From Bigelowiella natans CCMP2755 (lineage: Eukaryota; Protista; Cercozoa), in assembly GCA_000320545.1 (NCBI GenBank), contig ADNK01000750.1:1-51845 (forward strand): a stretch of 51,845 nt of DNA. Direction: 5' to 3'. Shown here in pieces: positions 702-39,115 of this stretch. Both the position numbers and the translations under genes were made by a program. Position 1 is the stretch's first letter, and every line of letters starts with the position of its first letter. The notes beneath the pieces are model-generated. The model worked only from the letters and a program-made list of their open reading frames with translations, was not told the DNA's origin and did no database searches.

Positions 702-2968
702 AAGAGAGAACAGGAAGAAATCATTTCCAAAGATGGGGGATGGTCCTGCCGCAAGTGCACGGCCTATTCTTCATTCATCAGAGTCAAGAACAATGAGGTG
801 TACCGTCGTACGTTATATGACATCATTTTCAGCTTTTTGCCGCCGGTGCGGTAACCGAAAATGAGGCAGAGGAGGAGGAGGAGGAGAAGGGGAAAGCAGA
901 AAAGCGTATAGAGCAAAAGAGCAGCTTGGAAAGTGGAGACCAAGAGCAGCACCAGAATGGGGGAGTGAATGATGAGTACGGTGATGATAATAACAATACC
1001 ACTGATGATGACGACAAGAAGTTGACGATTACGCGGAAGAAGAAGACGGAGAAAATACGGCAACCATCACTCCTCGGTGTGCTCACAGTTGATAGGCGTG
1101 TATGCGCGCCGCATCAGAACAGATACGCAAACAAACATCGTAAATAATGTCGTCTAGCATATTCCAGAAGCAAATTGTTTGCTTTGTGCTTGCTTTGTTT
1201 TGGTGAAACATGTAGATAGCCTCTGCTCCTCTCTGTCCTCTCTTCTTCTTCTATTTCTTCTTCTCATTCTATAGCAGTGGTCGCACGGTGCGATGTGAAG
1301 CTATGCAACGGCATGCACGCATTCATGCGCATGGAGTGATAACACATATGACACTTTTCCCATCATAATCGCAGAGCTGACCGAGGAAGCGAATAGAATG
1401 GAGGATGAACTGTGGGGAGTCGTAGCGCAATACGCACAGTATATTTACTTTCACAAGGTGTATGGGATGATTGTTATTCCGAGTAGGGATTTAGGAAGAA
1501 TGTCTATTTAAGATACTAATGATGCACTCCTCGTCATGTAATCTTTGTTCTTTCTTCTAGGAAGAGAAGATGATGATATGAGATGAAAGATTGGATGTAT
1601 AATAATCGCAGATGATCTTGACTAACTTGAGTCGTTACTCTCCCCCCCCTCTCCATCTATCTCCCCTCTCCTGTTTAGGGGCTAGTGCTTACGGAAGAAG
1701 AGGTTGCTTCAATATTAGGCTGGCGCTCCCGCATTGCCAAGGTAGATTAGTTTTGTTATACACGGGAGAGAGGGGGGGGGGGGTGAGGGGTGGAGGGGAG
1801 AGATTCGACGTCTCAACTGTTTGCTGTATTAATCGTAATGATTCTTGCATATAAATGCTATGCCTACTACAGGATCGAGAGTCTCCGTATTGGCAGCTTC
1901 AGGCTTTGACTCGAGAGGTAGTAGATACATTTTGCGGTAGTAATTGAGGATAAAGAAACTTCGGCGAAGAACTATGTGTCCGGTGCATACTACGTACAGT
2001 CGCGCGTGCATGCAGCGCGATCGGGAGAAGTTTGATATATCTGAAGATGATATCCTCTCCTCCTCTCGCTCTCTCTCTCTCTCTATCTCCCTTTCATCTT
2101 TCGCTCATTGTAAATATGATGCACCGAAAATAATGTTAGATCTCGCGGTTTATGAAATCAATAAGGAGTCCATCAGGAATAGCAGCAACTTCACTGTTAT
2201 CATCAGGGTCCAGGTTGTGCCACGTTGCATGTAGTAGCAGCGAAGAACCCGCATATCATAATCCTCTTTATCTTGATTCACCATGTTTTTTTAATTCTGT
2301 CACATAATTTCCCACATCTTACTATTCGTGTAAATATCGTGTCCCTGCAAACGTGTATTTATACATTAAATCACATGATGTTTTTATCGGTTGTGAATGA
2401 TGTATTTGCAGCGTTGAAGGTGGTAGAGATCGCAAGGCTTTCTCAGCAATTCAAAAGCGGATTGAACAAGAAAGGAAAATCGCCCCAACGGTACGACGTA
2501 CCACACATCACATCTAAGCATGCAAAGAATAGTGCGAATAATCATATCAAGAGACATATCTCTGAATCGTTTTATGTCTTCGCCCTGTTCCCATTCATTC
2601 AATTGCAATCTTCGTTGTTCTTGTCGTCAACACTGTGCAGCGAATAAAGCAATATCTATCAATCGTGCATCGGGCGAAGGAGAAGCAGAGCAAACATCTC
2701 AAGCTGCTTGACAGTCAAATCCCTGTAATGATGAGCCAATTCTGTGTGCGTTTCTCAAATCTACGTGGATCCTGCACGATGAGCTTCTCTCCTATCCCAA
2801 CACCAATGGAAATAGCTCGAGACAGTGGTGTTTTCATGTTGAGTTGCCTTTTTCATCGGAGAAACGTGTGGATGATGACACTGACGTTGCAAACAAACAC
2901 CAAGTCCGCACGTTGGTTTTTGTGTTCGCGTCTGCCTCTGTCTCACGTGTGCTGACCCTGTGTGTGTG

Positions 2969-3011
<43 letters not shown>

Positions 3012-4735
3012 ATCGTGTGATTTAGGAGGAGGAAATGCGATTCTCAAACTTTGATCCGGATCGGATTCTGCTCAAACCTGAGCACACTACAGCTCCTCCA
3101 AAGGGGCAACTGTGACAAGGATGGATGCTGACTTTGGTGGAAACGTGCTGTTGTGTGAAGAACACGTTTGTCTGCGTTTTGCGCGAAGTGAAGCACCATC
3201 GTTTGTTGAAGTGAACAAAAGTTTGATTTGTGCGCAATCCGCACCAGCGCGTGTGAAGTGAAGCTCACTCGACCGCCAGCTGGTCAGGTGTGCTGCGAAC
3301 ATTGACTTGCTGTGCAACAGCTAGTCAGGTGTGCTGCGAACATTGACTTGCTGTGCAAAAGCGGAGCGCTTCCACTTCACACTCCAACGTCAACATCGCG
3401 CTGTCGCACGTGTGTGCACTCTGCAGTCCAAACTTTGACTTGTTCTGGACAGGAAGCACGCAGCAGTGGCGTGGCTTCCACGATGTGCCGCTCCTCCACT
3501 TGCACGATTGCCAGGTCTGGAGGTTGCCCCCACTGCTGCTGGACTGCGTGCGCACGTTGTCACCTGCTAGCCTGGTCATTGACAATTCGCGGTCAATCTC
3601 GCAATGGCTAGATGGTCTCGTGGGCACAAGTGACTTTTCAGTGAGGTCGTCAGCTGTGCCAAGCATGCGCACAACGCAACAAATCAGTGTTTCCAAACCG
3701 TGCGCGTGTTCACTGGAGCGCGTGTGTCGTGCGTTGAGACACGAACAGAACAGCAAGTGAATGTGCCGTCCAGCTGTGTCGCAAACCAATGCCTTCGTGT
3801 GTCTCCTTCTTGCTGACGCGATCATGCTGCAAAGTGGTTCGAAGCAGTGCACTGAGGTTCAAAGCAACCCACCAGAGTGGCAGAACAGCTTCCTGGGACA
3901 AAGAAAGCACCCCAAAACAACACCTGCCTGCAAGCGCAGGCGGACGAAATCACAGGCTGGAATCTGAGCCGATTTGAACGATTGAATCTAAATTTTCATG
4001 TCGTCTTCGTTAACAAGAGGCGGTTTTGTGCAGGATGTGTTTCGTAGTACCGGTAGTAGTTAGTGAGTACCTGATGACATTTTTGACTGACACCTGATGC
4101 TCCAACAAACAACAACAGATCCACCATCATCTAGACGACCTACCACTAGTCAGAGGGTAAAACTACTACTACTACTACTGCACATGCTACCACCACCACT
4201 ACCCACCCACTTGTGTGAACTAAGAGCATACTATTACTTTGCTAAACTGCCTTCGTTTTGTTTTGTTTTGTCAAGTAAGAAGATCTGCGTGAGCTGAAGG
4301 AGTCGGCTCCGAAAATAGCGCTACCCTGCTCAAACGGACGAGTCCTAGCCCCCTTCACCACTCTTCCTCTTCTTCATCGTCTTCTCCTTTTTTCAATAGA
4401 CCCACAAGCGGAATCATCATGGGCGCGTCGTCTTCATCAGAGGTTAGATTTCTAAATAATGTACACAAATTCGTCGTCTGAGCCGTTCCACAATCGTTGT
4501 ATTGTGAATTGATGCTACTACTGTTTTGCGTACCAGCCATTGTACAATCCGGTCAATGACCTCCGCGAAGGTACTTTATTCAACTACAAATTACTCGATA
4601 ACGTGTTTTAAGCGGAATGCACGGTGTTATTTCGGACATATTTCTACTGCCTGATGTTGTTAATGTTCGTGGTTATTGATGATTCAGAACCACAAGACCT
4701 GGAAGCAAGGATATCTTGTCAATCAATCCTCAGGT
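148..4735 (+). CDS. Multi-exon gene of unknown function, 5'-incomplete; possible RanBP2-like zinc finger near 735-865; middle part TA-depleted
   Basis: Series of short open exons bounded by AG/GT: ~1374-1458 ELTEEANRMEDELWGVVAQYAQYIYFHK, ~1680-1740 GLVLTEEEVASILGWRSRIAK, ~1874-1917 DRESPYWQLQALTRE, ~2412-2490 VEGGRDRKAFSAIQKRIEQERKIAPT, ~2641-2724 RIKQYLSIVHRAKEKQSKHLKLLDSQIP, ~3026-3102 EEEMRFSNFDPDRILLKPEHTTAPPK. WSCRKCT (~741) and FCRRCG (~835) could form one finger. No family recognised; ends uncertain. Confidence 0.45.
527..703. repeat. Compound (TA)n-(TG)n-(GA)n intronic microsatellite, typical of introns throughout the window
   Basis: Directly visible. The intact long (TA)n shows that TA loss is regional, not genome-wide. 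Confidence 0.95.
2815..3987. other. TA-depleted (hypermutated) tract inside a host-like gene
   Basis: Manual count: 5 TA dinucleotides in about 1170 bp (3 CTAG, 1 TTAG, 1 CTAC). Flanks have several per 60 nt. Confidence 0.9.
3277..3358. repeat. 41-bp tandem duplication
   Basis: cagctggtcaggtgtgctgcgaacattgacttgctgtgcaa followed by cagctagtcagg...; the copies differ by CTGG versus CTAG. Confidence 0.95.
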
Positions 4736-4751
4736 ATTACATAGAATATAT

Positions 4752-4793
<42 letters not shown>

Positions 4794-4882
4794 ATGTGTG
4801 CGTGTGTGTGTGTGTGTGTGCGTGAATGTATATGAGTGTATGTGGCGTTAACCACAAATAACACATTCCTACTACGCATCAG

Positions 4883-7264
4883 TGCCGATTCTAAAATCGT
4901 CGGGATTGACCTTGAATGGGAAAATATCCATTTCTCTGTTCCCGGAAAAGGTATAGCAACCTTATCATTCTGACTACGCTTATAACTTCCGCTCGCACTG
5001 CGCGACAGAGCATTAGGGAGAGCAACCCTTTGGTTCACAGAAACATCTTCGAGTATTGACTTGGATTCAAATAACTTAAACAGAGGCGGGATCGATGAAA
5101 CACATCTTAAACGGGTGCTCCGGACAAGTGAAGCAGGGCGAGTGTGCGTGCATTATAGGGCCAAGGTAGTAGGACGTAGAGACGACGATGATGATGATGA
5201 TGATGATGATGATGGTGATGCTACATTTCTGGCTAGAGTAAAGACTGAACGATCAATTCAAAGCATGCCCGTTATTATGGACTTTGGAAGCTTGATGACC
5301 CTCTCTCCCCCCTGCCTCTCTCCCTCCAAAAAGCGGCGCTGGAAAAACAACAATGATGAATCTCCTAGCTGGTGATAAAACAGCCATATTTTGTTTGTAT
5401 TGGTGTACTCCGTGAGTGCCACCATGTGATGATTCCTAGCGGTAGGAAGAAACAGGGAAGGAACTCCCTTGCAGCAGCCTCTTTATTGTCCTTTGCCAAT
5501 AGGAGCAGCGCCATGACCTTATCCTCTTCTTCTTTAATTTCTCTCCTATTATGCCTCCTCCTTGTTGCAGCTAATGTAATAACAATAATAATAATAATAG
5601 TATTAATAATAATACATGATAGGACGAGTGAGCGCACCGTGGGAGGGAGAGGTTACTGCCAATGGGCTTCCGGTAATTGTTTACCAACCATCAACCGATC
5701 TATACTACTACTACTTGCCACGTCTTTGAGGAGAATAGCAGCCTGTTGTTCTCCAAACACACTTAGCGTACATTGGTATGAGCAAGCAGCCATCTTCCCC
5801 ATCCACGTACCACCCCCTCAAACAATTCAATCGATAATACCAACGAAAGTGCTAGAGTATGGCGTGTAGAGAATGATATGGTGGGACCGCGTGTGCAAAA
5901 ATTCGTGCCAACTAAAAGGGGGTTGGGGTGCGGATATCATCTTGAAGAAATTGAATGGATGTGTGCATGATGATCTAATAGTCGTTATTGAATAAAAACA
6001 GGTGGAACCGAGGCAGTTCAGCCAGAGCATTGCGTACGTCATGCAAGATGAGGTCAATTCAATATCAATACTACTACTACTACTACTTCTACCAGCACAG
6101 GAGTTAGTTGGCATTTACTACTATCAGCATGATGAACATGAGTAGTAGTAGTGGTAGTAGTAGTAGTAGTAGTAATAGTAGTTGCGATAGCACCAACAGC
6201 GACATCACAGATCATCATCTTCCAGGCACTCTTTGCGACGGCCACGCCCCGGGAAGCTTTGCACTTCTCTGCAGCAATGAGACTGCCGCGTAATATTAGT
6301 CAAACGACTTTTGTATACATGTAGAGAGAGGCAGAGAGAAGTTGTATCTGGGTGCTTGTTGCATGCTGCCGTCGTTGGTATATTGGGATTTGGTAGGCCT
6401 CTCTTCTTCTTTTCTCCTTATACTTAGCCTTACTCTCTCCTCTTTCATTTTCCTACTACAAACCCCGTACAAACAGCATCAACTACTATTGCGGCAAGAA
6501 CACGTCTAGTCAATTCACTTCTTAAAGACCTTAACCTCGAAGAGTAATAGTAGTAGTAGTAGTAGTAGTAGTAGTAGCAGTAGTGTAGTACTGAGAGAGA
6601 AACATTGCTTTCAATGTAGAAGTAGTAGCCCCCCCCCCAGCCATTTATGTCTTGTTTGTTTGCTCTTTGCCCGCTCACAAACTGCACCCCCCCCCCCCTT
6701 CTTCCCCCCCGTGCAAAAACTTCCTCCCTATATTTTATACTAGATGTGCTGATACTCTGGTGGGGTCAGTGCTTATTCCTGGTATATCTGGGGGTGAGAA
6801 GAAGGTAATTTTGTCATTCACTACTCGCCATTATGCACGTCGCATATTAGAAATGTGTACATTTAGAGGACTTCTGTGGGGGTGGAACTTATCACCCAAC
6901 CGAAGATCATATTCCTAGATGAACCTACCAGCGGCCTCGATACCTATTCAGCGTATCATCTAGTACAGATTCTCAAGGCTCTATGCCAGCGCGGTTGCAG
7001 GTACTCTTTGATAAGCTGTTGTTTCTTCTGAGAGCTTCATCTTTTTCTCTTCTATTTCTTTGTATTCTTCTGGGCGCAAGCTTTATACATACACACATAT
7101 TATTATTATTATTATTATTGTTGTTGTTGTTGTTATCAGTGTCGTCTGCACGATCCATCAGCCTTCATCAGAGATATTCCATCTGTTTGACAAAACCATT
7201 CTCATTCAATCAGGTTTGATGTTGTTTTTATATTGTTTTGTACTGATCTCTCTTTCCACATACG

Positions 7265-7303
<39 letters not shown>

Positions 7304-7602
7304 GTGTGTGTGTGTGTGTGTGTGTATACAATACCGTCCTCTTGATTCCCTTCCCTTAAAGTCGTCGTAGATCTTCCCCACAATCGAATTCTCTCCTTTC
7401 ACTTCTCCTCTTCCTCCTCCTCCTCCCCTTAATCAGGCAGTATTGTTTACAATGGGAGGGTTGATGAGATGGTTTCTTATTTCTCCACCTTGGGATCTGC
7501 CTATGAATGTCCTCCCAACTATAATGTACGTATGTGTGCACTACTTCAAACCATTAGCTGATTAAACATGCAAGGATTAATCACATGAAATCATCACAAG
7601 TG

Positions 7603-7643
<41 letters not shown>

Positions 7644-9746
7644 TACATAGTATCCCACCTCCTCCACACAGATATCATCATCTTTCCCACCCCCCCCCCC
7701 TTCCCGCACCACCACCACGAGCACTCCGGTGGTGTGAGAATATCATCGCTCTCTATTAACGTCGTACTACTACTACTACTACTCTACTACCACTACCACT
7801 ACCACTACTACTGGGGTTCTTCTTCTTCTTCTTCGTCGTTGTCGTTTTGCAGCCCGCAGATCATGTGATGTTCCTTATGCAAAAGAAAGGTGGTGATTCA
7901 TTCATTCGTTCAGTCATTTTTGAGTATGCTGTAGTAGCAATAAATGGCAGTAGTAATAGTAGTGGTAGATCGATGAGCCCCTTCTACTGTCGTGTTTGTT
8001 ATTTATAACCTCCCCTCCACCCGTCCTCCTCTTCCCAACAGAGTCCAAAGATAGTCCCTACTACTTAAGGGATAAGTGGGCCGAAAGAGTAGTCAGAATT
8101 CTTTCATGCATGAAAAAACAGTTGATCAGCCTTCTCTGCATTATTATGTGTATGCGTGTTGTTAGTATGTGTCTACAAACATTTGTGGGGCAGGGATCGA
8201 TGCTCTTGCTTCTTGATTTCTCCTTCATCTTAGCATGACAGATGATGACGATGATGATTATGATGATAATGATGATGGTGATGATATCTCTGTATTCCAG
8301 GAGAAAAATGAGCAGAAGTTGCTTGTTGACCAGTCGATAAAGCTGGAGAAAAAGGTGATAGCAGTGTATAATACCGAGGGTCTTATCATCATTTACAATT
8401 CTTATTATCATAATAGTATATAGTTTTGATTATCATCATGTGGTCCCTTCTTCCTTCTCTTTCCTATTCTTCTTCTTCTTCTTCTTCTTCTTCTATGGGT
8501 GTCCTTAGTAGCACTCACTTGTTCTAAGGGTTACTAATACTACTACTACTACCACTACTACAACAACTACTACTTACTTGCGTAGAGATCGCAGTTCCAG
8601 GTCAGCTACAGCTCCAAAGCTGGTATTCTGAGGCAATTTCAGCACCTCATCACTAGGGAGGTAATGAGTAGAATATCAAACAAATCGATGATATTTTGTT
8701 TTTGTAATTTGTTTGTACGAATACTCACCAAAGGAAGAAATCGGTATGATGACGATGATGGTGATGATGATAATAATGATGATGACGAGAAGTAGTTGTA
8801 GAACATCATCAAAGGTTGGAATATTATAGGCACCTGTGCCTTCGGCTTCCTCCTCCCCCTCCTCCTCATTTACTTGCTCTTGTTAATCTTCAAATGACCT
8901 CCTCCTTTCCGCATCATCATCATCACCATCATCATCCGAAATATCCGCCATCATCATCTTCGTGTACGACTGCTACCTCATTTGCGTCATTATTACTGGT
9001 GATACTAATGCTGCTGCTGGCGGTGCTATATACCAGGCAAGGAACACTGTTCGGGACAAAAAAACGCTGTTTACGAGGTCGTGATTAATCCACATCATCA
9101 TCACCCTCATCACTATGATCACAATTGAGAATAATAGCAAAGCAATGACGGCAGCCAACTCCCCCTCCCATTCATGCCCTCTCCTAACAAATGCAGCGAG
9201 AGTGAGAGAGTGGGTGAGCTATTCCGGTATAGCAAAAGGAAAATGACAATATTGATGATAATAATCATATCATTAGTCTACCATCATTGAAATAGTAATG
9301 GTTCTAAATAATAATAACCTATACATGTTTGGATGAAAAGGTTTTTCTTAACAATCTTCCTCAATCTCCTCTACGGCATGGTATTTAAGGTGAGAATAGC
9401 TAGATAGAGATGTGTGCGTGTGCTGCGGATAGTAGTAGTACTTGTGGTAGTACTAGCAGTACTAGTAGTGAATCACGTTGGCCACGTGTGTGTGTGTGTG
9501 TGTGTGTAGTTGTCTTTCGCGCTTCGCTGCTCATGAATTATATCACCCAGTGTGTCAATGAAAATGACGTAGACATCCATGTTGTTGTTTTGTTGATGAT
9601 GATGATGATGATGATGCTTTTATAGATAGAGTTAAATATAATTATGCCATCTTGAGCTACTGGTGGTGCTGTTTCTTCCGTGGTTATTCTCATCGTCACT
9701 ACTACCCAGGGAGTAGGATCACGAGACGATATGCAAAGCAGATACG

Positions 9747-9777
<31 letters not shown>

Positions 9778-10495: not shown

Positions 10496-10528
<33 letters not shown>

Positions 10529-10939: not shown

Positions 10940-10971
<32 letters not shown>

Positions 10972-13316: not shown

Positions 13317-16251
13317 CTATATACCAACGGAGGGTTGGATCGTCGGCTTGTGCCACTGCGACGTTCCAGACGATTGATGGAAATAAAATGGCACGCCCTC
13401 ATTCGTGTACTCTAATCGCCACCCTGGTGGCAGAGTAGCAGCTTGTCCGTTATGGGTAGTAGTTGGTTCCAAGGCAACTGCCTGAGCAATAACAGCAGGC
13501 TGCTGCTTTTGTCTCATCGTCTGCTGCTGCTGTGTGTGATGCGATCTGGTTCCGTGATTAACCATGAAGCTATTCTGGCGTCTGTTGCCTCCGCGTGGAA
13601 CTCCCCCTTTGCCTTGCCTACAGCAGCAGTAATATAGTGCGCAAGCGACCGCCAATACTACGAGAACCCCGACTACAATACCTGCTATTGAGCCCCCATT
13701 GTCCTCGCCGCTGTCTCCCCCTCCCCCACCACCACCCGAGCCCACTGTAGGAGAAGGGGCTGATGGGTTAAGAGACTCAGGCACACTCACGGTGGACACG
13801 GTCGTACCGAAGAACCCTGAGAGCTGTGCAGGTGAGTAGTTGGATAGAGCGCTAGCGGTTGCCTGTGGAGACTGTCCTTGGGACATGTGGAGAAATTCAA
13901 TGCTCATGCGAACACTCGCGGCGACGTAAGTCACTGTGAACGAGTCGTCCGCGACACCGAGGAGGCTGCTCAGTGTACTTCTGTACGTGGTCTGAAGAGT
14001 TGGCGTGACTTGCGCCAATGTCAATGTCGAGAACAGGATGCTCACTCGAAATTGCTCAATCGTCGGTGCTTGGGTGGGCGCCGTTGATGTGAATACGACA
14101 GGAGATGATGATGGAGAGTATGTACCACCTGGTGTAGTGGGTTCTCTTATAGGAATGCTAGGTACAGGCGTTGGGTATGAGCTCGGAAAGTTGGTAGGAA
14201 GATTTGTAGGGAAGGGGGTGGGATCGACTGTTGGCGTATTTGGACAGGTGGGAGGACTGCCTTCGCACAAAGAGTTGGATACAGTGCCACCTGACTCGTC
14301 TCTACAAATTGCATCGAAAGGACACACTCGGTACCATCGATACACCCTCAACTGAGAGCTGTCAACACAGGCTGGCGTGCCTCCTGCATCATACTGACTT
14401 TGGCATTGCTTTCCGCTACCACACGGGGTACCTGTCACAGCTAATGCTGGGAAGAAAGTGCTATAGCCACCACTCGCCGCAGTTGTGCAATGAATTAAGC
14501 TGCAATCCGCGTATCCATTGTTGAGATTCCTTGGATATATATACCCAGCTTGTGGCGGCGACACACAATTGTCGGCTGGGGAAACACAATGCCCCTCGTA
14601 ACACATTCCAGCAGCAGATATGCTGGTGGATGTGAGATCATTGCATGTAGTTCCAGTGGCGGAGAACAAGTCCATTGGGCACTGTCCTGAACTGCCGGTA
14701 CAAAACTCATCGACATCGCAATCCGAGTGTACGGATGAGCGACAGTTAGTAGTGGAGGGGAGAAATTGCCCGCTCTGGTCACAACAGGCTTCAGTGATGG
14801 CACATTGGCAGCCTGCATTTAACGTACAAGTACTCATATCACAACATGAATCTGTATTGCCAAAGCCGACGTCACACTGTTCACTATCGTCTATAATCCC
14901 ATCTCCACATATAGGCGCTGCGTTCCACTTTGATGCCCCAGAATCATTCTCTAGGCAACTATTCCCAGTGCTCCTGTAAGTTGCACGTGTCGATCCATTT
15001 GTATAAGTTGCATCGTTGGTTCCAGCAGTGAGGAAGATATTTATATCTTGCTTAGAAACGACAGAGAACTGGGTACGTACTGTTGCTTCATTCCCTCCTG
15101 GAGACATAATTGTTGGGGAACCTTGATAATCATGACTCATACCGAAGTTGTGACCCAGCTCGTGAGCCACGGTAGTTCCCACATGAATCACAGATCCGCC
15201 CCCCACCATATTAAGATTCATGGACAACTGATTATTACACATGCCCCACGTGTAAGCGATACCAGCTGTAGAACCACTCAGATTCTCGTCCGTGAACAGC
15301 GCGTAATTGTCGATGGGATTGTTGAAAACGCTTGCGAGGGTTGCCCTATTCGAGTACGAGAAGGATCTGAAGGATGTCAATAAGCATATCGCTCCAACCT
15401 CACCTGCGGCACAAGGATTGTCGCAAGCGGACCCACCGCTGCAGCACTGAGTCTCGCAGTTCGTAGTTGTGTAAGTTAGATCGGATGGGTTGGCATTGCG
15501 GAAGCTCAACTGCCCTATTAGCCTTGGGGTCACATAGCAGTTGAAAACACCATTTTCACGGAGTCCTGAATATGTTTGTCCTCCATAGACCCCACCAACG
15601 TATGCTAGGTACACGATATTGAACACGGCGGCTGAGTGTTGCTCCGTGTCGTCGCCACGAATTGATACACGCTTGAAGTCATTAACGACCAGGATGTCTA
15701 CGAATTTTCTGTTTGTCGCGGAGCTGTCGCACTCACCGGTGTCCAGTGGATGGATTTGAGAGGTAACTTTGGATAGGATCTTGAGGCGGGAGTTGTGTAC
15801 CTGCTCTTGTTGGTCATGGTGGTAGTGATCGTGAGACGAGTTCTCTACATGATGGTGATGATGGTGATGATGGTCATGTTGCGCATCCTTTCCTAATTTC
15901 TTCTGAGGATCTTTGAGGTTTCGATGATATCCTGCCTTCTTTAAACGAAACTTTCCATCCTGATCAACTTCAAGGTTTTCATGATTCCCGCACGTTAACC
16001 TAATATATGTTCACACATTTTTTGTTGATTAAACCAAGCTGTAGAGCATTATATATTTTATCCAATCGGGTTCATCAAAGAGTATAATAAAATGAAAAAT
16101 TAAGGTAGTACGTACTCTTGTTTCGGATTGTGGTGCTTGAGGTCGAAAATAATATGCCTAGCTTCCTTTCTGTCTGCAGCACCCTCATTAACATTATGAA
16201 TCTCGAAGGTTCCCATTTTGTGTTCCAGCACGCCCATGACCACTGATAATG

Positions 16252-16295
<44 letters not shown>

Positions 16296-18078: not shown

Positions 18079-19523
18079 ATGGATGATGAAAAAGATGAAA
18101 TGACGGCCCAAATTAAGAGGCGAGTAAAGAATAATAGCTTATATCAGCAGCAGATATCGGCTTGGAGACCCCTTGTCACTCCGACTTGCATATCGTGGAT
18201 CTTCGTTGTGGTGGCCATTTTGTTCTTAACATTGGGTGCTGTAATTCTCGATCAATCCGCAAAGGTTCTGTAATCCACAACCGAAAGTGAAAAATTGTTA
18301 TTTTGCAGTTTTATTGGTTTCAACCTGATCTCTTTTTATAAACGACAATAAACAGACACTAGAACTTACTAAGCGGTACGACGATAAATGCGGAAACGAT
18401 GCAGAGTGTACCATAACTCTCAAAGTGGAAGAAGACATGAAAGGCCCTATTTTCTTCTACTACAAGCTCGTCAACTTTTATCAAAACCATCGCTCCTATG
18501 TCATGGACTACGACATACAACAACTTCAGGTTGAAATCCAAGAATATGTCAATGAAACTTTTCCTCTTAAGTCGTATTCTTGTTTTAAATTTCGAAGGGA
18601 GATGTCGATGATACAAGTTCATGCTCTGTTGAAGAGACAAAGACCAAGGACGGAAAATCAACTTATCCTTGTGGCCTTATTGCTAACAGCTTCTTCAACG
18701 GTTGTTCACAGTCTATACTTTCAGTTTATAACCTGTGATCGCTGCATTATCACTTATGATGTTTTGGTGAACCCAACAGACGTTTTTACAGTGTACCAAA
18801 ATGGCAGATTGCTCGAAGGCAACGTAAGCATTCCGTTCATCCTTTCGTCGTATTTTCTATATTTAATATCCAACCACTATAGGAATGGGATGGTAGCGAT
18901 ATTTCGTGGGAATCAGATCGCAACACAAAATTTAAAGGACCAGATGGAGGAGTAGCTGTATTAGAAGAGGTTAATCGAAATGGGACTAATGGAAATAGGC
19001 TCCCCCTTCCAGACGACCAAAATTTTCAGGTTCTAATTCACAATGACATTATTACAGGCATCAAATATGCACTTTATGTTTCTACAATATCGATGCAACC
19101 TTCATTAAGATAGTAACAATGAACACTGTAGGTTTGGTTTCGAGTTGCCGGCCTCCCTCGTTTCAACAAGTTATACCGAAAAATTGGAATGGATTTAAAG
19201 AAAGGCGATGAATTGACAATTACGATACAAAACAATTTCGATGTTAGAAAATTTAACGGGGAAAAGCACGTGTTTCTCTCTCAAGTGAGCTGGCTAGGAG
19301 GCTCGAACTTTTTCCTGGGTTCATGCTACATCATCGTCGGATCACTCTGTGCAATTTATGCGATTTTGATGTTGTCTTGGCGTGCGCACCACGCCAGACC
19401 GTTGGGGAAAATGGAATATTATGAATGGACAGGTACCATAATAGATAGCACTAACTTCATCTGTTTCTAACCGATTTTCCCTTGTCTGTAGGCCTTGGAC
19501 GGGTCGTGAATGCCAATGGTTGA
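18079..19523 (+). CDS. CDC50: CDC50/LEM3 family P4-ATPase flippase beta subunit
   Basis: QQQISAWRP, FYYKLVNFYQNHRSY, PCGLIANSFFN, ISWESDR, QVWFRVAGLPRFNKLY, SWLGGSNFFLGSCYIIVG; short GT-AG introns; stop TGA at 19521-19523. Confidence 0.95.
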
Positions 19524-19849
19524 GTTGTTGGGCTCACTCACATGCATGATGAACTATACAAAGTTTCCTTCAAAATGTTTCCTGTCCCCAATGGCAGAGA
19601 TGAAATTTTGGTCACATGAGGGACTTGAAAAGAGTCCTTTCTAGGCTACTTGTGTGGAAGAAAAGCCGCGCTTCAACAAGTAGGACGAACGCATGGGAAC
19701 ATCGCTTTGACATGCACGGAACTAGCTTGATTTCAATTCTTGACTTGTGCACATTCTTCAAAGCCATCGCTGTGCGTTTGCATGGAAGTTGTGGATGTGC
19801 GATGCAAGCAAAAAATACAGCGAAATAAACATGATAGACATGCAACATG

Positions 19850-20190
19850 ATGTACATGTATGTGTGTATACATGAGACGGATGTAATGAACAATTAAATT
19901 TTTTCAATGGTCATCCTGATGTAGCTGTGCAATGCAGCGGCTACAGCGCTAATGCGCTAATGTTGTGTCTGTTGGTTTCTACCACTACGTGCGTGCTTCA
20001 TGCACTTGAAAGCGTCCTCGTTCGACCGATGATGATGTCGCGCATTGCGCGCGACGACAGTTCTTGTTTCTTTTTCAGCTTTTGTTAGCAGCTTTGTCTC
20101 GTCATTGCGATTCATGATTGCGCTCATTTGATTGCGCAATCTGATTTGTTGTTGACTGTGTGTTGGACATTGCAGGAGGTGATCCAAGTG
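19850..20190 (-). mobile_element. LINE (non-LTR retrotransposon) 3' fragment, copy 2: end of CCHC finger, 3' UTR and microsatellite tail
   Basis: MDHLDHLLQCPTHSQQQIRLRNQMSAIMNRNDETK... is homologous to DMDHILQCRKCGPQRLRINKQLTAIMDRNDETT of the adjacent copy; shared 3' UTR; (AT/AC)-type tail near 19855-19870. Confidence 0.75.
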
Positions 20191-21465
20191 ATCCATGTGT
20201 GCATGTATGAGACGGATGCAATGAAGTGTTCAAAATTTTCCAATGGCCATCTCCAATGTAGCTGTGCAATGCAGCGGCTACAGCGCTTACAAATTGTGTC
20301 TGTTTGTTTCCTTGGTCACATGTTGCATGCATGAAAATGCATCATGATTTGGTCTAGCATGTCGTGCTTTGCGCGCAGCTTTGCGAGTTGATTTTTCTGC
20401 GGTTGTGAGGCGCGTAGTCTCATCGTTGCGATCCATGATGGCCGTCAGTTGTTTGTTGATTCTGAGTCTCTGTGGTCCACATTTTCTGCATTGGAGAATG
20501 TGGTCCATGTCTTGCAATGTGTTGCATGTGTCGCACATTGCTTCCAATTCTGTGCGTTGTCCTCTGGACAGCAAAAAAGTTCCAAGGTACCGGTTGCCAA
20601 CACCACAGATGGCGCGCATCCATGATGTGGCAATGCTTGGCAGCTTCAATGTGATTCCTGTTGTGCGAGATCCAGGCATCCAGGCATGAAACCAAGTTTC
20701 TTCAAATGCATGGCCTTTGTTCCCTCTTGGCACCAGTTTGTTTTGAAATTGGATGTAGCGATCCGCATGATCGTTTTGTTGTGTGTGTTCAATTTCCTTT
20801 TCAGTGTCTTGCTTCTGGCACATGTGTCGTGGGGTGTTCCGCTCCAAGCAATTTGGTCGTGATCAAACTGAGTCGGCGGTACAAGGACACTCTGTTCCAC
20901 GACCTAGTTGTGTCATGCTAGCATGCCATTTGTGTTCCAGTGAGGATTCAACGTGGCATCCGAAAGAGCTCCAATTGAGTACTTCTTCTTCCACCACGTG
21001 TCCGTTGCCATCATTTTTGTCCACCCATGCATTGGTTCGCAACCATGCTTTGGTGCATTGAACTTGTGTGCGACAACGTGGTGGCAACATTGCTAGATTG
21101 CCGCTAGCACATGGGGTGTGTCATTGGAAATGGATCCTGGCAATCCCAGCACTCTTTTGAGTGTTTGTGATTCCATGGAATCCAGCAGCTTTGTTTTGAG
21201 ATTTTTGCGGGACCTCCATGTGCTAGATGTGGGTGCGACATGTCTGCTTGTGGCTGTGAACCACGTGTTGCAAAACTTCATTCTTGTGTTGAATGGCATT
21301 TGTGATCGCATGGAGCACAGCCTGAGCAAGAATCTTCTCTTTTTCTGCAGCTTCAGATGTGCAACAAGGGCGTGCTTTTCGAAAGTTAATATTTCGTCAA
21401 ACCACAGTCCCAAGCATTTGCCACATTCTTTCCTTTTCATTTTTCCTTGCAGGTTGAGTGATGTG
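20190..21465 (-). mobile_element. 5'-truncated, degenerate LINE: end of RT domain, C-terminal CCHC finger and 3' UTR
   Basis: KECGKCLGLWFDEILTFEKH...RLCS...KFCNTW...RVLGLP matches the LINE RT C-terminus (YLG.xxD..LT...H) if C is read as Y; WMRAICGVG...CDTCNTLQDMDHILQCRKCG is the LINE ORF2 C-terminal zinc finger. Stops or frameshifts are present. Confidence 0.85.
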
Positions 21466-22057
21466 TTCATGTGTGTACATGCATTGATGTGTGTACACAT
21501 GTGTGCACACACACACACATCTCATGTACACAGGCCACATTGCTGTGTCCATTGCAAGTGTGGCTATGACATATATGTATGTACACAATGTGCATAGCAC
21601 ATGTTACATGTACATATATGTGCACCATCCACATTGCTCTGTGTCCATTGTTACAAACACGTGGACGCAACGTTTCTCCATCGATCCGAGTGCATGACCA
21701 CAAATGCTTACACGTACTAGCTTAGAATGGTTCCTACATTCCATTGCCATGGACAATACAACATTGTGTCTGATCATGTGCACCACGCATGCACATCACG
21801 CACTGCTGTCGTCGCGCATGCGGGGGGCGCGGATCGAAGGTGCGTTTATACGCACCGAATAAAGGCCGTCGCACATCCAAGCACACAACAGCACACATGT
21901 ACACCCTAGAGAAGAGAGAAATTGACTAGTATCTGTCCATATGTACGAACCCTCTGTGTAATTGACTTCATAGACTTAATCCATGACAGTGTCGGACGCT
22001 ACATTTAGTGCACATTCCAGTGTAACCCATGCTAGCATGCTCCTCTGACCTACTTAC

Positions 22058-25499: not shown

Positions 25500-26600
25500 A
25501 CGATGGCATGGCATCGCGCTGCTAGCTGGCTACGATGCGAATCGAATAAGCTCTACAAGTCTAGAGCTGCACAAAGTTGTACTGCATGCTGGTCTAGTGG
25601 CTGCGGCTCTGAGGCTGTGTGGCGTCGCATTGCCGCGCAGCGCGCATGGCAAGCTAGCTTGTTGAGAGACGACACACATTATTTCTGTCAACGCTAGAAC
25701 GCATTGAAGGCTATAATTGAAAGTTGCAGCTGCACAACAATAATAACGTGGTCCACCATGCCAATCTGCATCGCAAAATTAAAGTTATAAAACGTGTGTT
25801 GCATCAAACTTCTAAAGCCCTATGAGGCTATATAGCGTACGCAAGTACGAACATATGTAGTTTTAAACACATGTCCTTGACATGTATTGTATACTAATAT
25901 AATAATGAACCACAAATGTCTTAGAGCTAGAACATGTGTGCTTTTGAGCGGGTACGCTCTTGTTATGGCCCTATATGAGGGCTATGTAAACTAGCTAGCT
26001 AGTCTAGCAGCGCTCACATTCCATGCATGCTAGCATGTCATGCGCATCATTGTTGCAGCTGCACATGTTATGACTGATGAACGCGCACATCTAGCTAGAC
26101 ATCGCTGTGAATGTGGTGCGCAAACTGAGTATAGCATGCGCAGGCTGCTAGCGCGCAGCAGGATGCAATACATGCACGTGCGAACGTATACGCATAGCTA
26201 GATAGCCTGTCTAGCTGTGATGCACACTAGCACAGTCTAGCAGTGTCGTCAAGCTGTACGCATGCTAGTATGTTGTATAGCATACACATGCACAGCGGTG
26301 CATGTACAAATTTAGATCCATTACACATGTAAGGTAATCAGTAGCACTAGAGCAAGACTAGAAGAAACAATGTGTGTGCACTAGAGCAAACTATAAGTTT
26401 CAGCTAATCTGTAGTATAATGCGCACAAGCTGAGCCACTTTTGACTTTTGATGCATGCATGTTGCAATGTTGCATGTATACGCCATCACCCGCTTATCAT
26501 TACATATTGTCAATATAAGTTGCGCATTACTTCGCATGTTGTAACAAATGCGGGCACGCTAGCCCCTACTAATTTAATTCGATGTTTTTCCATGCACACA
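25500..26600. repeat. Non-coding CTAG/CATG/TGCA-rich island, probably a partially hypermutated repeat remnant
   Basis: About 10 CTAG within 26000-26280 plus gctagctagc runs; no ORF; no terminal repeats identified. Confidence 0.45.
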
Positions 26601-28979: not shown

Positions 28980-29013
<34 letters not shown>

Positions 29014-29204: not shown

Positions 29205-29242
<38 letters not shown>

Positions 29243-29678: not shown

Positions 29679-29719
<41 letters not shown>

Positions 29720-30690: not shown

Positions 30691-30727
<37 letters not shown>

Positions 30728-31252: not shown

Positions 31253-31284
<32 letters not shown>

Positions 31285-31699: not shown

Positions 31700-31735
<36 letters not shown>

Positions 31736-35862: not shown

Positions 35863-36039
35863 TATCTCCAAAAGACAGTCTACTGATGTGAGATGGTGTA
35901 GGGGATATCTAGCTAAGTGTACTTCTGGCTTGGCCCATTTCTCCTCTTATGCCGTTCATTGTGTGTTGCTGCATGCAGAGGAATCTGTTGACAAGTAACC
36001 CGGAAAGAATGGTGACATATCATCACAGCATGATCAAAC

Positions 36040-36726
36040 TTGCTTGCCTTTAGCGGTTGAATTATTTGAGCCAGAACTCTGCACGCAACACGCTACTGCT
36101 CGGCCTTACATCGACCCCAGTAGCCCGCACTTGCCAGCTTGCTGCAAAATTCAACACAAAAGTTCGGACAAATTTGCCATTCAGCCGAGCCAACAAAGCT
36201 TGACTAAACTGGCATGTGCCGCATGGCATCATCCATGTTGAAATGCTGGCATTCCCTTAGCTAGCTTGGCTTGGTCTTCTCTAGGAAGTTCGAACAGCGT
36301 GCGTGACATTGCATTGCATGCTTGGTGTCGTCCCAGGCCATGCTGCTGCAGTCTGCACTAGCTAGCTAGCATCGCACAGAGCAGCAGGTGTGCCAAAAGG
36401 CCAAAACTAGGGTTTGCACGTCATTGGATCAAATCATCGTGTTCACAACGTGCCACACCTCGATCAAACCCTGCAATGGCCTCCAGCGCGATCGCACGCA
36501 GCTGCGATGCGGCCGCGCGGCCGCGGCCAGCCATGGCTGGCCTGCTAGCTGAAAAGATGTCTGCACGCTTTTGTGGCTCGTTCAAAGCCGCCTAGGTCAA
36601 GATTTGCGGCCATTTGTGGCTTTTTGAAGGACCGCTCTGAGGTGCCAGAGCCAGAAAATTCTGGCCATGTTGGTGCACAATGCAACTGTGCACGCTGGCA
36701 TGCAAGGCACAGCCAAGCGACTTGAG
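36040..36726. repeat. Unclassified TA-poor, CTAG-rich repeat-like sequence upstream of the LTR
   Basis: TA frequency declines toward the LTR; ctagctagctag runs; GC-rich palindromes at 36509-36542; no coding signal. Confidence 0.4.
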
Positions 36727-37130
36727 TGTCAGCGGTGTGGCGCCACCCACGATTGAGAAGCTGTCGCAGTGTGCACACGCCCGTTCACACTGCACGCTGC
36801 GCTGTGCACATCTAGACATCCAAACATCACTGCACGCTGCGCTGTGCACATGCGCATGGAAGTTCTCAGAACTTCGAGAATCTTCCAGAGAATTCGAGAA
36901 CATTCCGGAAGCTTCGAGAATCTTCCACGATGTTCGAGAATTCTCCAGAAGCTTCGAGAGCATTCCGGAAGCTTCGAGAATCTTCCAGAACACTCGAGAG
37001 AATTCGAGAGAGTTCTGGAGGATTCGAGAATGTTCGCGAATGCGCCGGAACCCAACGCGCACATACACGTAGCGCAATGAGTTGACAACAATCATCAGAA
37101 TTCAAACGGACGCAGAACTGCGTGTTGACA
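36727..37130 (+). repeat. Putative 5' LTR (about 404 bp)
   Basis: 5-bp terminal inverted repeat TGTCA/TGACA; internal 24-bp direct repeat cactgcacgctgcgctgtgcacat; degenerate gaagcttcgagaatcttccag subrepeats at 36860-37040. Confidence 0.7.
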
Positions 37131-37371
37131 CTTGGTGACATCAGCACAGTCCCGATCAGCGCACACAAAGCGAAGCAGCTGCCCCCAGCCCGCTGAAAGG
37201 TCACGATCCTCAAGAGGACTTGCTGGAGAACCAAGAAAGAAAAAGGAACCAAGCAACCCCCCCCACCACCCCTTCCAACTGAAAGGGCCAAAGCGACAAC
37301 AGCATTCCCTCAGCCAATCTTCGGTCAAGCCTTCACAACACTGAAAGACAAAGAAACAGGAACAAGACACC

Positions 37372-38470
37372 ATGTCAGACAAGCAGATGGACTCCCTGCT
37401 GAAAAACTTCACCCTCAAGTGCGATGGTGGCAACTGCAAACCCCACACGTGCAAGCCAATGTCTGCTTTCGAAGCAGCCGATTTGGAATCATGCTTCAAT
37501 GTGAACGTGGAAACAGGAGGAAAGGTGACAGAAGTGAACGCACGCACCGACCCTGCTCACCGACGAGAAGTGCTCAAGCTTTCTCCAGAGCAATTTGACA
37601 TCCTCAACCCTGAACCTGAAGGAAGAGGATCACAAGAGAAGGTGAACAAAAGAAAGAGAGGAAGGTTCTTTCTCACAGCTGCTCTGCCTGACAAACTCTT
37701 CGATTTGCTCGAAGGAAAATCCAAAGATGCAGCAGTCACCTCAGCAGCCTTGCTGGAGAAGTGCGAGCCTGCCAATCCTGCAGCCGTCAAAAAACTTTGT
37801 TCGAAGCTGAGTGACACAAACACGGGTCAGTGCAATGCTAGAATGGAGACTTTGCAAAGCATCGTTCTGACCTTGACTCCACTGCAAGAAGACTTCGAGT
37901 ACAGCACGAAGGATGCTCCGACAACCAAGCGCTTGCCACTCCACTTCGAGGACCAGCACCTAGCGAAAAATGCGAGACCACAGTGACAGTTGTCAACAAC
38001 AAGAAAGACGTCACCTTCGACTCTGCAGTGGACATGATCCGTTCCCACACGAACTCCCGATCGCTTGATGACGGGCAGAAACCTTCAAAGAAACACACAG
38101 GACACGCAGCTGCAGAACACAAGTGCGCAAGGATGCACGATGGCTTGGAGAAAAGGCCAAACGAACTCACTGGTCAGCTGAAGACCTGCAAGAGGAAACT
38201 CAGAAAAGGAAAGAACAGGCATGACAGCGGAGCACATCAAGATGACTCCAAGAAGCAAAAGAGAGAAGACCACTTCTCAAACTCAAAGAAAAGAACAAAG
38301 TGCCATCACTGTGGCAAGAAAGGACACTGGGAGAAAGAGTGCAGAAACAAGACAAGAGACGAAGGCAAGCAAAACAAAGGAAAACACCGTTCTTTCATTG
38401 ACCATGGCTCTCCTTCCCAAAGACTTTCCCACATCAACAAGATGGCACGCGACAGTTCTCACCTGCAAAC
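37372..38470 (+). pseudogene. gag: Copia gag pseudogene (frameshift near 37960)
   Basis: LKCDGGNCKPH...MSAF resembles the Copia gag N-terminal (F/Y)DGxNY..W motif with Y->C/H; LPDKLFDLL...ALLEKCEP; EKCETTVTVV; knuckle CHHCGKKGHWEKEC (CX2CX4HX4C). One Tyr in about 400 codons. Confidence 0.8.
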
Positions 38471-39115
38471 GCTGAAGTGCACCCATGAGCCTTTGATCCT
38501 TCTTGTTTGCAAGTGTTTGCAAACACCAAACACTTGCAAACCATTGTTTGATTGCTTCAAACACTGCGCGAGCTCTTGAATCGAAAACAAGCATTTGATG
38601 ATTTGAACAAACAATGTTTGGTCAAACACGTTTGCAAACATGTTTGTTTTCAAGTGGTTGTGCCTAGCTAGCTAGCTCTGGTCAACATCTGTCCATGGCT
38701 AGATTGTGGCTGGCGATGCCGTTTGTGACTGCTTGCAAACGACATGCAGGCGGTGGGTCGATTGAAATGGTAATTGATCGTGCATCAAATGCTTCACCAG
38801 TCGAGAGCGCTGAAGCATCGCACAGCAGCAGTTTTTGAATGCAATGCAAGGCACACGGGTGCTAGCGTGCGTCTAAAAGCAAGTACATGAACACAGCACT
38901 ACCCTGTGTGGCTACACAGAATTGCATCATGTAGGCTCGTATTATTTTGTGATGTTCAGCGGTATAAAAAAACTGCATTGATTACAGCCTCGCCCGATCC
39001 GCTATCATATCGTGTATGCATGCTAGATCTCGTGCGCTGTGAAGTATGAGATGAAATACTACAAGACGCCGCCGGAAATAAACATTCCTGTAAGATTAAA
39101 GACATTATCCAGAAC

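Follow-up and report, generated by a model that had tools for sequence, protein, structure and literature searches.

Three short TA-poor tracts in Bigelowiella natans as probable fossil footprints of TpA-specific hypermutation

TpA hypermutation of integrated viral DNA has been described in Bigelowiella natans in a recent preprint, the main text of which leaves the enzyme unnamed (Mettrop et al., April 2026, bioRxiv 10.64898/2026.01.13.699255). Mutation-accumulation lines gained 231 mutations in two viral inserts, and 230 of these changed A>G or T>C within TpA steps. The hypermutation was seen in asexual culture, and over the long term it leaves DNA low in TA and high in CA+TG. By a rule of three consecutive 1-kb windows the preprint reports 124 TA-poor clusters genome-wide, and the RT and DDE Pfam families are enriched in TA-poor CDS. 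A naturally occurring system that edits T:A to C:G in targeted chromosomal DNA would be a new kind of genome defence, of clear interest for base editing, and that claim belongs to the preprint. Its main text and abstract contain no mention of CTAG, ApT, strand runs, LTR pairs or copy-by-copy polarity (Mettrop et al., 2026).

We have analyzed a stretch of 51,845 nucleotides of the B. natans genome (the window), which holds three short stretches where nearly every TA step has been turned into TG or CA. An earlier note on this DNA took such loss for the mark of a candidate 'reverse-RIP' genome defence system; the system is already described, with an experimental demonstration in the main text of the preprint (Mettrop et al., 2026). 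The process itself is already known, and our copy-by-copy comparison adds rules to it. We consider it highly probable that the tracts are fossil footprints of TpA-specific hypermutation in B. natans, that the three differ in history, and that the process changes T:A pairs within TpA to C:G.

Three TA-poor tracts in the window

The intervals 2815-3987, 20401-21360 and 36721-38760 contain 5, 10 and 10 TA steps respectively, exactly as had been counted by hand, with none at all in 37081-37830 and 37965-38660. The corresponding TA observed/expected ratios are 0.08, 0.17 and 0.08, compared with 0.85 for the whole window, and across the three tracts the ratio is raised to 1.59-1.84 for TG and to 1.27-2.03 for CA. 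In 300-bp sliding windows the median TA ratio is 0.84, and the low-TA windows cluster in three separate blocks (about 2700-4050, 19500-21450 and 36450-38850). Judged from the positions of individual TA steps, the edges of the tracts are sharp to tens of bases (Table 1), bearing out the regional nature of the loss. Outside the tracts six (TA)14-22 arrays are intact, again as the earlier note had it, and the peptide motifs ECGKCLG, KCDGGNC and CHHC that it named are all found as described.

The exons that adjoin tract 2 belong to a CDC50-family gene, an identity verified by Pfam. A 59-nt intron of this gene at 19431-19489 is spliced. The gene is an unmutated neighbor of the tract, and was used as a control.

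Table 1. Positions of the tracts and associated features in the window
Feature	Position	Strand	Remarks
Tract 1, single-copy, TpA-erased	2700..4050	.	Core 2815-3987 with 5 TA; AT observed/expected 0.57
Tract 1, edges	2657/2813 to 3989/4045		From TA positions
CDC50-family host gene, 3′ exons and 3′ UTR	18425..19890	+	Pfam; TA content normal; transcribed
Very high-copy short repeat(s) adjoining LINE 3′ end	19838..20190	.	Moderately TA-poor; TA observed/expected about 0.25
Tract 2, edges	about 19900 to 21476		From TA positions
Tract 2 core, 3′ part of 5′-truncated non-LTR (LINE) retrotransposon	20194..21468	-	
Tract 3, edges	36408 to 38771/38863		From TA positions
Left flank outside Copia element	36410..36726	.	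Same signature; TA 0.17, TG 1.8, CA 1.5
5′ LTR of old Ty1/Copia, internal tandem-repeat region	36727..37199	+	Aligns with 417-bp LTRs of full-length paralogs
Gag region, Retrotran_gag_2 and zinc knuckle	37372..38503	+	Pfam; Copia family homology ends at 38503
8-bp insertion, form N4-CTAG-N4, AATG duplicated	37834..37845	.	Missing from all 19 paralogs
Ancestral CTAG	37960..37963	.	TA survives in window copy and both other mutated copies
Right flank past Copia homology, TpA-erased	38504..38860	.	Leftover TA nearly all within CTAG

That the tracts might be artefacts of assembly or contamination deserves almost no credence. Both unique flanks of tract 2 are identical to contigs of three independent DNA runs (2021 and 2025), which also enter the tract, so that tract 2 is not an assembly artefact; tract 3 belongs to a family native to the genome, and normal host genes lie on either side. 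Among the three runs there was no TA>TG or TA>CA difference in tract 2, in a comparison of contigs, which can hide rare variants. The LINE body gave no visible RNA, and no RNA editing was seen at tract 2, where the lone RNA-only change (T>C at 20305) lies outside a TA step in multi-copy sequence. The tracts look like fossils.

Different histories of the three tracts

Tract 3 is an old, truncated Ty1/Copia copy comprising the 5′ LTR and gag, a diverged member of a Copia family native to the genome; homology to the family is absent to the left of 36723. Over the same stretch each of 17 Copia paralogs has 61-67 TA steps vs 5 in the window copy. Comparison with these unmutated paralogs gives the polarity of the change. 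Out of 58 conserved ancestral TA steps in the window copy 24 have become TG and 30 CA, with 1 kept as TA. Mobile DNA has thus been a target, both strands have been changed, and the direction TpA to TpG/CpA is the opposite of that of RIP, as the earlier note had proposed on each count. The expected conversion of tyrosine codons is likewise complete in gag, where all 21 have changed, giving 11 Cys, 9 His and 1 Arg. The outcomes in the window copy, whose subfamily is only 86% identical to the other copies, bear no relation to the outcomes in the other mutated copies, with which they agree at 26 sites and disagree at 26. Three leftover TA steps in the tract arose anew through C>T or G>A, and were then left unconverted. 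Tract 3 was mutated in place.

Tract 1 is single-copy. It has no DNA paralog in its own genome beyond one 150-bp match, and two protein searches found no protein paralog there; a scan of viral contigs revealed no viral relative. It contains many long open reading frames because the stop codons TAA and TAG have been lost, and Pfam gave no match for eight further ORFs of this tract and two of tract 3. A (TG)n array lies within it at 2959-3010. This DNA was probably mutated in place.

The core of tract 2 has a different past. All 24 LINE paralogs sampled are TA-poor, with observed/expected ratios of 0-0.51, and in the longer ones RVT_1 lies directly 5′ of the homologous part. There is a gradient of depth over the element, indicating a copy number of roughly 170 at the 3′ end and of about 5 at the 5′ end; in the adjoining repeat, at 19838-20004, word depth reaches 47,000-56,000 vs 60-80 for single-copy DNA, and in the paralog search this part gave matches of its own (query 451-790). 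At 42 of 74 sites a single outcome is present in at least 90% of the copies, where 0.016 such sites would be expected from independent hits, and the Cys of the K-Y-L-G motif (KCLG) is common to all 17 copies that cover it. The TA-poor zone stops within about 10 bp of the 5′ truncation point of the LINE. By the alignment of copies, the TA-poverty of tract 2 was mostly inherited from an already mutated source. The earlier note had read KCLG as a Tyr to Cys change; the conversion signature stands, while its having been made at this locus does not, given the 17 copies with the same residue.

An explanation by inherited composition alone, in which the elements arrived or were amplified TA-poor and nothing happened at these loci, is therefore largely true for tract 2, where shared sites, shared KCLG and the coincidence with the truncation point all speak for it. 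The possibility that all copies are equally TA-poor with Cys in place, which the earlier note had raised against itself, holds largely for the LINE with its 24 TA-poor copies and is false for Copia. For tract 3 inherited composition fails: 17 paralogs are TA-normal, outcomes differ between copies and between LTRs, and flanks that are not part of the element are mutated as well. Even the LINE has 18 sites with mixed outcomes, and private hits in individual copies, and the raised TG and CA of the family indicate conversion within the source lineage rather than an intrinsic bias. As an account of the window as a whole, inherited composition is improbable. Spread seems to continue in retroelements that are already partly mutated, namely the LINE subfamily and perhaps the Copia lineage to which the full-length elements considered below belong.

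Action of the process on Copia elements

Two full-length mutated Copia paralogs (L051 and L052), in each of which 318 ancestral TA steps were scored, provide a much larger sample of outcomes. These steps became 19 TA, 158 TG and 130 CA in the first, and 26 TA, 136 TG and 143 CA in the second. Including double CG outcomes, 291 and 286 of the 318 bear A>G or T>C, and G>A and C>T together number only 14 and 35 in the two elements.

Over their 417 bp the two LTRs of L051 differ from each other only at TA sites, of which there are three, with the readings TA/CA, CA/CA and TG/CA. Thus 2 of the 3 sites on which this test is based differ between the LTRs, with 0 background differences in 414 bp, in an element with 94% of its TA converted. 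Because the LTRs differ only at TA sites, the hypermutation acts on integrated DNA. It acts after integration, and is near-saturating while background mutation is near zero.

Either strand is picked at each TA, independently of neighboring sites. Runs tests of strand choice along the two elements gave z = +1.8 and -1.4, i.e., no strand-coordinated runs, and neighboring sites up to 15 bp apart were hit on the same strand in 84 cases and on different strands in 95 in one element, and in 88 and 83 cases in the other. The bases flanking TA impose hardly any bias on which strand is hit. The same outcome is found in both elements at 61% of sites (160/263, p = 5e-4), and some of their conversions may be inherited and not independent. 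The unique flanks, outside the elements, bear the same TA to TG/CA signature, which extends past the element by distances of a few hundred bases up to over 1 kb.

All 17 sampled Copia copies of the other kind are unmutated. One is an intact copy with a 1480-aa open reading frame and LTRs that are 99.76% identical; two that were checked are 99.7% identical over their full length. About 8 of the 17 lie within DNA that is already TA-erased. Repetition alone does not trigger the hypermutation, and the process does not need a repeated or a currently active element. Guidance by homology, as suggested in the earlier note, is unlikely in view of these at least 17 unmutated copies, two of them 99.7% identical in full length, and of the single-copy tract 1. 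A RIP-like process triggered by duplication or homology might be considered since two of the three tracts are repeats, and the main text of the preprint itself draws the analogy with RIP (Mettrop et al., 2026). The same observations on unmutated copies (one of them intact) and tract 1 nevertheless make it very improbable, as do the opposite polarity and dinucleotide, and the 186-kb viral target described in the preprint is single-copy (Mettrop et al., 2026).

Sequence context has a marked effect in one case. In the full-length mutated elements TA was kept in 16 of 20 ancestral CTAG sequences vs 29 of the 590 TA outside CTAG (p = 2e-16); TA inside CTAG is largely spared. The protection is about fivefold beyond the prediction from half-sites, which suggests a protecting CTAG-specific modification or binding factor. 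An ancestral CTAG of this kind is present in tract 3 (Table 1). The 3′ G by itself was considered as the block and rejected: conversion by strand is 0.40 with a 3′ G and 0.45-0.51 with the other 3′ bases, and ATAG/CTAT sites are almost fully converted (1/90 kept). Only the full CTAG blocks.

The idea that every CTAG in the tracts is a spared TA was also partly rejected. Perfect 4-bp duplications flank 8 of the 20 CTAG sequences in the tracts, and one of these is a proven 8-bp insertion by comparison with 19 paralogs. Since the insertion is absent from those paralogs, its TA was gained later instead of being spared, and with the 4-bp duplications it indicates that part of the CTAG excess in the tracts arose by later insertion.

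ApT is converted as well, though weakly, at a few percent of the rate for TpA. At V-A-T the private A>G changes numbered 15/613 vs 10/2011, 20/620 vs 19/2028 and 29/133 vs 28/558 in three comparisons; the polarity is inferred in the window copy, with its 86% identical subfamily, and is sound in the two younger elements, where the effect is small (2-3%). A fall in the AT ratio, from about 0.8 to 0.64, occurs only in the old window Copia copy. A-A-N sites have changed at 0-4%, vs a complete loss of TpA.

These results bear on A-to-I editing of RNA by an ADAR-like enzyme, or editing of cDNA before integration, with the changes fixed by reverse transcription. Retroelements are among the targets in the window, ADARs favor a 5′ U, and the genome has one A_deamin-type gene. 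Yet reverse transcription makes LTRs identical, and those of L051 differ at 2 of 3 TA sites, one of them TG vs CA; moreover the hits are divided equally between the strands and form no runs, A-A steps are nearly untouched (0.4-1.7%), and mutation extends to unique flanks and to a single-copy tract. In the main text of the preprint the targets are double-stranded DNA viruses that mutate in culture in their integrated state (Mettrop et al., 2026). Editing at the level of RNA or cDNA is extremely improbable.

Candidate mechanism and comparison with known systems

In the process that we propose, T:A pairs in TpA are changed to C:G, TA reading TG or CA according to the strand hit, and the action proceeds one domain at a time on mobile or foreign DNA that is silent. 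One base of the double-stranded TpA would be altered enzymatically, with conversion of adenine to inosine as the leading guess and oxidation of thymine as the main alternative. Adenine deamination and a 6mA-linked step, both put forward in the earlier note, are guesses at this stage. Targeting may follow a silent-chromatin or RNA-guided state, and the process would be episodic. We tentatively suggest that the agent could be an enzyme recognizing TpA as a palindrome in double-stranded DNA (methyltransferase-like, or dimeric and base-flipping) rather than a single-strand deaminase. If partly mutated elements do keep spreading, the defence would be leaky, shaping the evolution of elements more than killing copies. 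A double-stranded DNA enzyme of this kind is suggested by the random choice of strand without runs, the protection of CTAG, the weak use of ApT, itself a palindromic substrate, and the covered unique flanks.

A scan of the genome for deaminase folds found one A_deamin locus and six CDA-fold loci, and an insensitive exon-by-exon six-frame search gave no match to the Tet_JBP, Dam-like and N6/N4 methyltransferase families; the scan crosses introns poorly, the controls for the Tet_JBP search gave no match anywhere, and the result does not discriminate between mechanisms. It follows that the lack of a Tet_JBP match weighs little against modification of the thymine of TpA instead of the adenine, e.g., oxidation by a dioxygenase to 5-hydroxymethyl- or 5-formyluracil that mispairs with G. 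The symmetric pattern is compatible with attack on either base of the pair, and there are precedents for the chemistry: thymine is hypermodified at TpA in kinetoplastid telomeres and in dinoflagellates, and 5-formyluracil leads to T-to-C changes. We regard attack on thymine as rather unlikely, the adenine route remaining our leading guess.

Whatever its chemistry, the search for the enzyme is constrained by these properties: action after integration, independence of strand without runs, sparing of CTAG, weak activity at ApT, independence of repetition, and spill into flanks. The tracts resemble the process described by Mettrop et al. (2026), in the text of the preprint, in the change of TpA to TpG/CpA, on both strands and regionally, in the combination of low TA and high CA+TG, and, for tracts 2 and 3, in the mobile origin of the DNA hit. 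They differ from its clusters in being fossils of 1-2.4 kb among host genes, too short for the three-window rule, and from its viral targets in being Ty1/Copia, LINE and a single-copy stretch without recognizable origin. The presence of such short tracts among ordinary genes, below the threshold of the preprint, implies that more of the genome has been touched than the 124 clusters suggest, and some retroelement lineages appear to have spread after mutation.

RIP in Neurospora and other fungi is similarly heavy, regional and dinucleotide-specific in its transitions, ruins mobile DNA and may reach into flanks. However, it changes C to T mainly at CpA, creating TpA, and is triggered by duplication, whereas here T:A becomes C:G at TpA, repeats can stay untouched and single-copy DNA is hit. 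RIP occurs in the sexual phase, and the process in the preprint in asexual culture (Mettrop et al., 2026). Hyperediting by ADAR of double-stranded RNA derived from repeats shares the reading of A as G and the preference for a 5′ U, but its target is RNA, it also edits A after A, and it would leave identical LTRs, none of which fits the present data. APOBEC3 provides a further example of host-driven, context-specific hypermutation of mobile elements, acting on retroviral and retroelement cDNA. It deaminates C on single-stranded minus-strand cDNA, giving strand-coordinated runs of G-to-A before integration; here, by contrast, the change is at A:T, without strand coordination, and follows integration.

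TA depletion in three tracts of the window

We have recounted TpA in the three tracts, numbered 1 to 3 from left to right. The counts of the earlier note were reproduced: 5 in 2815-3987, 10 in 20401-21360 and 10 in 36721-38760, with zero in the stretches 37081-37830 and 37965-38660; the peptide motifs described there and the surviving (TA)14-22 arrays were likewise present. The observed/expected ratio (obs/exp) of TA is 0.08, 0.17 and 0.08 for tracts 1, 2 and 3, compared with 0.85 for the window overall. That of TG in the tracts is 1.59-1.84 and that of CA 1.27-2.03, and CpG is unremarkable. Sliding windows of 300 bp have a median TA obs/exp of 0.84, with strong depletion confined to three blocks, whose edges, taken from the TA positions, lie at ~2657/2813-3989/4045, ~19900-21476 and 36408-38771/38863. 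Outside these edges normal TA density (~1 per 10 bp) is regained within tens of bases. The hypermutation signal is real and strong, with the polarity given to it in the earlier note, which was right in outline.

The neighbours of the tracts are ordinary host genes. The ADAM-like gene combines a reprolysin propeptide, M12B metalloprotease, disintegrin and C-terminal WW domains, which is unusual for a protist. Tract 1 is single-copy, and searches of the DNA and protein of its own genome, of Pfam and of viral contigs revealed neither a recognisable protein nor any paralog or relative among viruses.

Coordinates of features in the window and of loci elsewhere in the genome (G000)
Feature	Position	Strand	Remark
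ADAM-like metalloprotease gene	13317-16832	minus	host neighbour
CDC50-family gene	18.4-19.9 kb		host neighbour
Tract 2, 3' part of 5'-truncated non-LTR element	20194-21468	minus
Tract 3, 5' LTR of Ty1/Copia element	36727-37199
Tract 3, gag part of Ty1/Copia element	37372-38503
N4-CTAG-N4 sites	3567, 3608, 9400, 12958, 17174, 20918, 21093, 22032, 25694-26358 (9 sites), 36362, 36812, 37838, 38668
L051	contig G000:C873		mutated Copia element
L052	contig G000:C485		mutated Copia element
L053	G000:C460:66000-75500, element at 1439-7953		apparently intact Ty1/Copia
A_deamin (ADAR/ADAT1-type) locus	G000:C2414:14438-15741		sole one found in genome scan

Direction, timing and strand of conversion in the Copia family

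The Copia family of tract 3 has many copies within its own genome, of which at least 17 are unmutated. Full-length copies are ~6.4 kb in length, with LTRs of 417 bp. The unmutated copy L053 retains an intact ORF of 1480 aa, whose gag, protease-barrel, integrase and RVT_2 domains are in Copia order; its LTRs are 99.76% identical, and it is 99.7% identical to a second unmutated copy, L050, across the full length. From these sequences the family looks to be active now, or to have been so recently.

Seventeen TA-normal paralogs were compared with the window copy over a shared region of 1.67 kb. They contain 61-67 TA (obs/exp 0.57-0.61, with TG and CA ~1.0), compared with 5 in the window copy, and 8 and 3 in two further paralogs (L002 and L012). 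At the 58 positions where these paralogs conserve TA, the window copy has 24 TG, 30 CA, 1 TA, 1 CG, 1 TT and 1 gap. None of the 21 Tyr codons of the intact gag survives in it: 11 read Cys, 9 His and 1 Arg. Because the paralogs are TA-normal and the Tyr codons have been converted, the polarity TpA to TpG/CpA is fixed for tract 3, and inherited composition is ruled out as its cause.

The mutated full-length elements L051 and L052 were compared with the unmutated L050 and L053. The 318 ancestral TA are represented by 19 TA, 158 TG and 130 CA in L051, and by 26 TA, 136 TG and 143 CA in L052. The LTR pair of L051 is identical over 417 bp except at three TA sites (TA/CA, CA/CA, TG/CA). Since reverse transcription yields identical LTRs, these differences indicate that conversion in L051 took place on integrated DNA. 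It was near-complete before any background difference appeared, consistent with the ~1000-fold rate excess measured by Mettrop et al. (bioRxiv 10.64898/2026.01.13.699255).

The window copy shows no relation in outcome to L012 (26 the same, 26 different) and almost none to L002 (28 the same, 21 different). L051 and L052 read alike, both TG or both CA, at 61% of sites (160/263, p = 5e-4); one LTR site reads CA in all four of their LTRs. This agreement suggests that some of their conversions, though a minority, came down to both from a partly mutated common source, which may still have been able to transpose.

Runs tests for strand coordination in the two mutated elements gave z = +1.8 and -1.4, and TA pairs no more than 15 bp apart were converted on the same or different strands at chance level (84/95 and 88/83). 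The effect of flanking bases on strand choice is weak (best position p = 1e-4). The lack of strand coordination and the slight influence of flanking bases argue against an RNA intermediate, and also against a deaminase moving processively along exposed single strands.

A mostly inherited LINE tract and the unit affected

Tract 2 is different in origin. Longer paralogs of this LINE carry RVT_1 directly 5' of the shared part, and read depth declines from 3' to 5', the pattern expected of LINEs. All 24 copies sampled are TA-poor (0-0.51; TG ~1.5, CA ~2.0), in a sample drawn with a mutated query and so biased to the relatives of that query. At 42 of 74 inferred TA sites (at least 15 derived copies) one outcome is found in at least 90% of copies, where 0.016 such sites are expected under independent hits. 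The Tyr of the K-Y-L-G motif is canonical in LINEs; it is replaced by Cys in all 17 copies that cover the motif. Eight sites still have TA in most copies, and the window copy retains it at 6 of them. The TA-poor zone ends within ~10 bp of the LINE 5' end. As outcomes, Cys and TA-poverty are common to the copies, and the edge coincides with the LINE 5' end, tract 2 is for the most part copied from a source mutated beforehand and bears few hits of its own. The refuting alternative named in the earlier note, inherited composition, largely holds for this tract, since the copies are TA-poor alike and share the Cys. Ultimately, the source lineage was probably hit by the same process.

Across the unique flanks of tract 2 (to ~19900, from ~21435), contigs of three DNA runs, one of 2021 and two of 2025, match the window without a mismatch. 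The interior of the tract is high-copy by contig depth. No TA to TG/CA differences between runs were seen at tract 2 in these contigs, which hide rare variants. RNA maps to the CDC50 3' exon and UTR, with a 59-nt intron spliced out; the LINE body has essentially zero RNA. A short, extremely abundant repeat at 19838-20004 is placed at the end of the CDC50 3' UTR and adjoins the LINE 3' end. Its contig word depth of 47,000-56,000, compared with 60-80 for single-copy DNA, suggests several hundred copies.

The erased zone, depleted in TA with TG and CA raised, extends ~175 bp past one LTR of L051 and at least 1.4 kb past the other, and at L052 the entire 10-kb locus is erased. In the window, the signature continues past the Copia homology for ~320 bp on the left side and ~270-360 bp on the right. 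The unit affected is a domain, not an element.

All 17 sampled unmutated Copia copies are untouched; the intact one is among them, and one full-length pair shares 99.7% identity. Roughly 8 of these copies sit within DNA erased beforehand, as seen in the upstream flanks of L003, L006-L010, L015 and L018. New copies may favour such regions or persist in them. Lying in an erased domain does not alone cause mutation, and repetition is neither sufficient nor necessary for conversion. The homology guidance suggested in the earlier note is unlikely, given these unmutated copies and a tract 1 that is single-copy and mutated. Three newly arisen TA in tract 3 have not been reconverted. Together with the unharmed fresh insertions in erased DNA, they point to an episodic process and to the tracts of the window as fossils.

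Sequence context and the published process

Ancestral CTAG retained its TA in 16/20 cases, compared with 29/590 for other TA contexts (p = 2e-16). The half-sites slow conversion mildly (CTAC/GTAG 17% kept, CTAA/TTAG 13% kept), and by our own calculation conversion at CTAG is ~5-fold below the prediction of a rough multiplicative half-site model. A simple rule in which a 3' G blocks conversion fails, as ATAG/CTAT is nearly all converted. Of the residual TA in the tracts, 20/65 lie in CTAG, compared with 3.6% of TA elsewhere. The window also contains 21 N4-CTAG-N4 sites whose 4-bp flanks form a perfect duplication; chance would give fewer than 1. Eight are within the tracts, and that at 37834-37845 is an 8-bp insertion missing from 19/19 paralogs. 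On account of these duplicated sites and this insertion, we attribute the CTAG excess of the tracts partly to true immunity and partly to stereotyped insertions made later. There is a CTAG-rich island at ~25.7-26.4 kb.

Private A>G changes outside TpA are concentrated at V-A-T in L051 (15/613 versus 10/2011, p = 9e-5) and L052 (20/620 versus 19/2028, p = 2e-4). The same is true of the window copy (29/133 versus 28/558, p = 2e-8; reverse change at V-G-T 5/153), for which the polarity is deduced, as its subfamily shares only 86% identity with the rest. Unmutated copies have an AT obs/exp of 0.78-0.84 and young mutated copies one of 0.81-0.82; the value is 0.64 in the window copy and 0.57 in tract 1. 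We read the ApT changes as a probable side reaction that runs slowly, at a few percent of the rate at TpA, and is visible in old tracts only.

A six-frame family scan of the genome found one A_deamin locus and six CDA-fold loci, and no match to Tet_JBP, Dam-like or N6/N4 methyltransferase families. Such scans are poor across introns and the Tet_JBP control was also silent, so they decide nothing. The data do not distinguish adenine deamination from thymine oxidation.

What the earlier note proposed as a candidate system has already been published. In their preprint of April 2026, Mettrop et al. (bioRxiv 10.64898/2026.01.13.699255) report that, of 302 new mutations in B. natans mutation-accumulation lines, 231 fell in two integrated viral regions, restricted to some lines, and that 230 of these 231 were TpA changes, either A>G or T>C. 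They describe 124 TA-poor, CA+TG-rich clusters, with TA-poor CDS enriched in RT and DDE domains, and propose an ADAT2-like deaminase as the enzyme. Our literature search found no other papers on TpA hypermutation. With the thresholds of the preprint, as approximated here, none of the three tracts reaches three consecutive 1-kb windows, so they would fall outside the 124 clusters. The main text makes no mention of CTAG, ApT, strand runs or LTR comparisons (bioRxiv 10.64898/2026.01.13.699255). To a process that was itself already known, copy-by-copy comparison adds mechanistic constraints.
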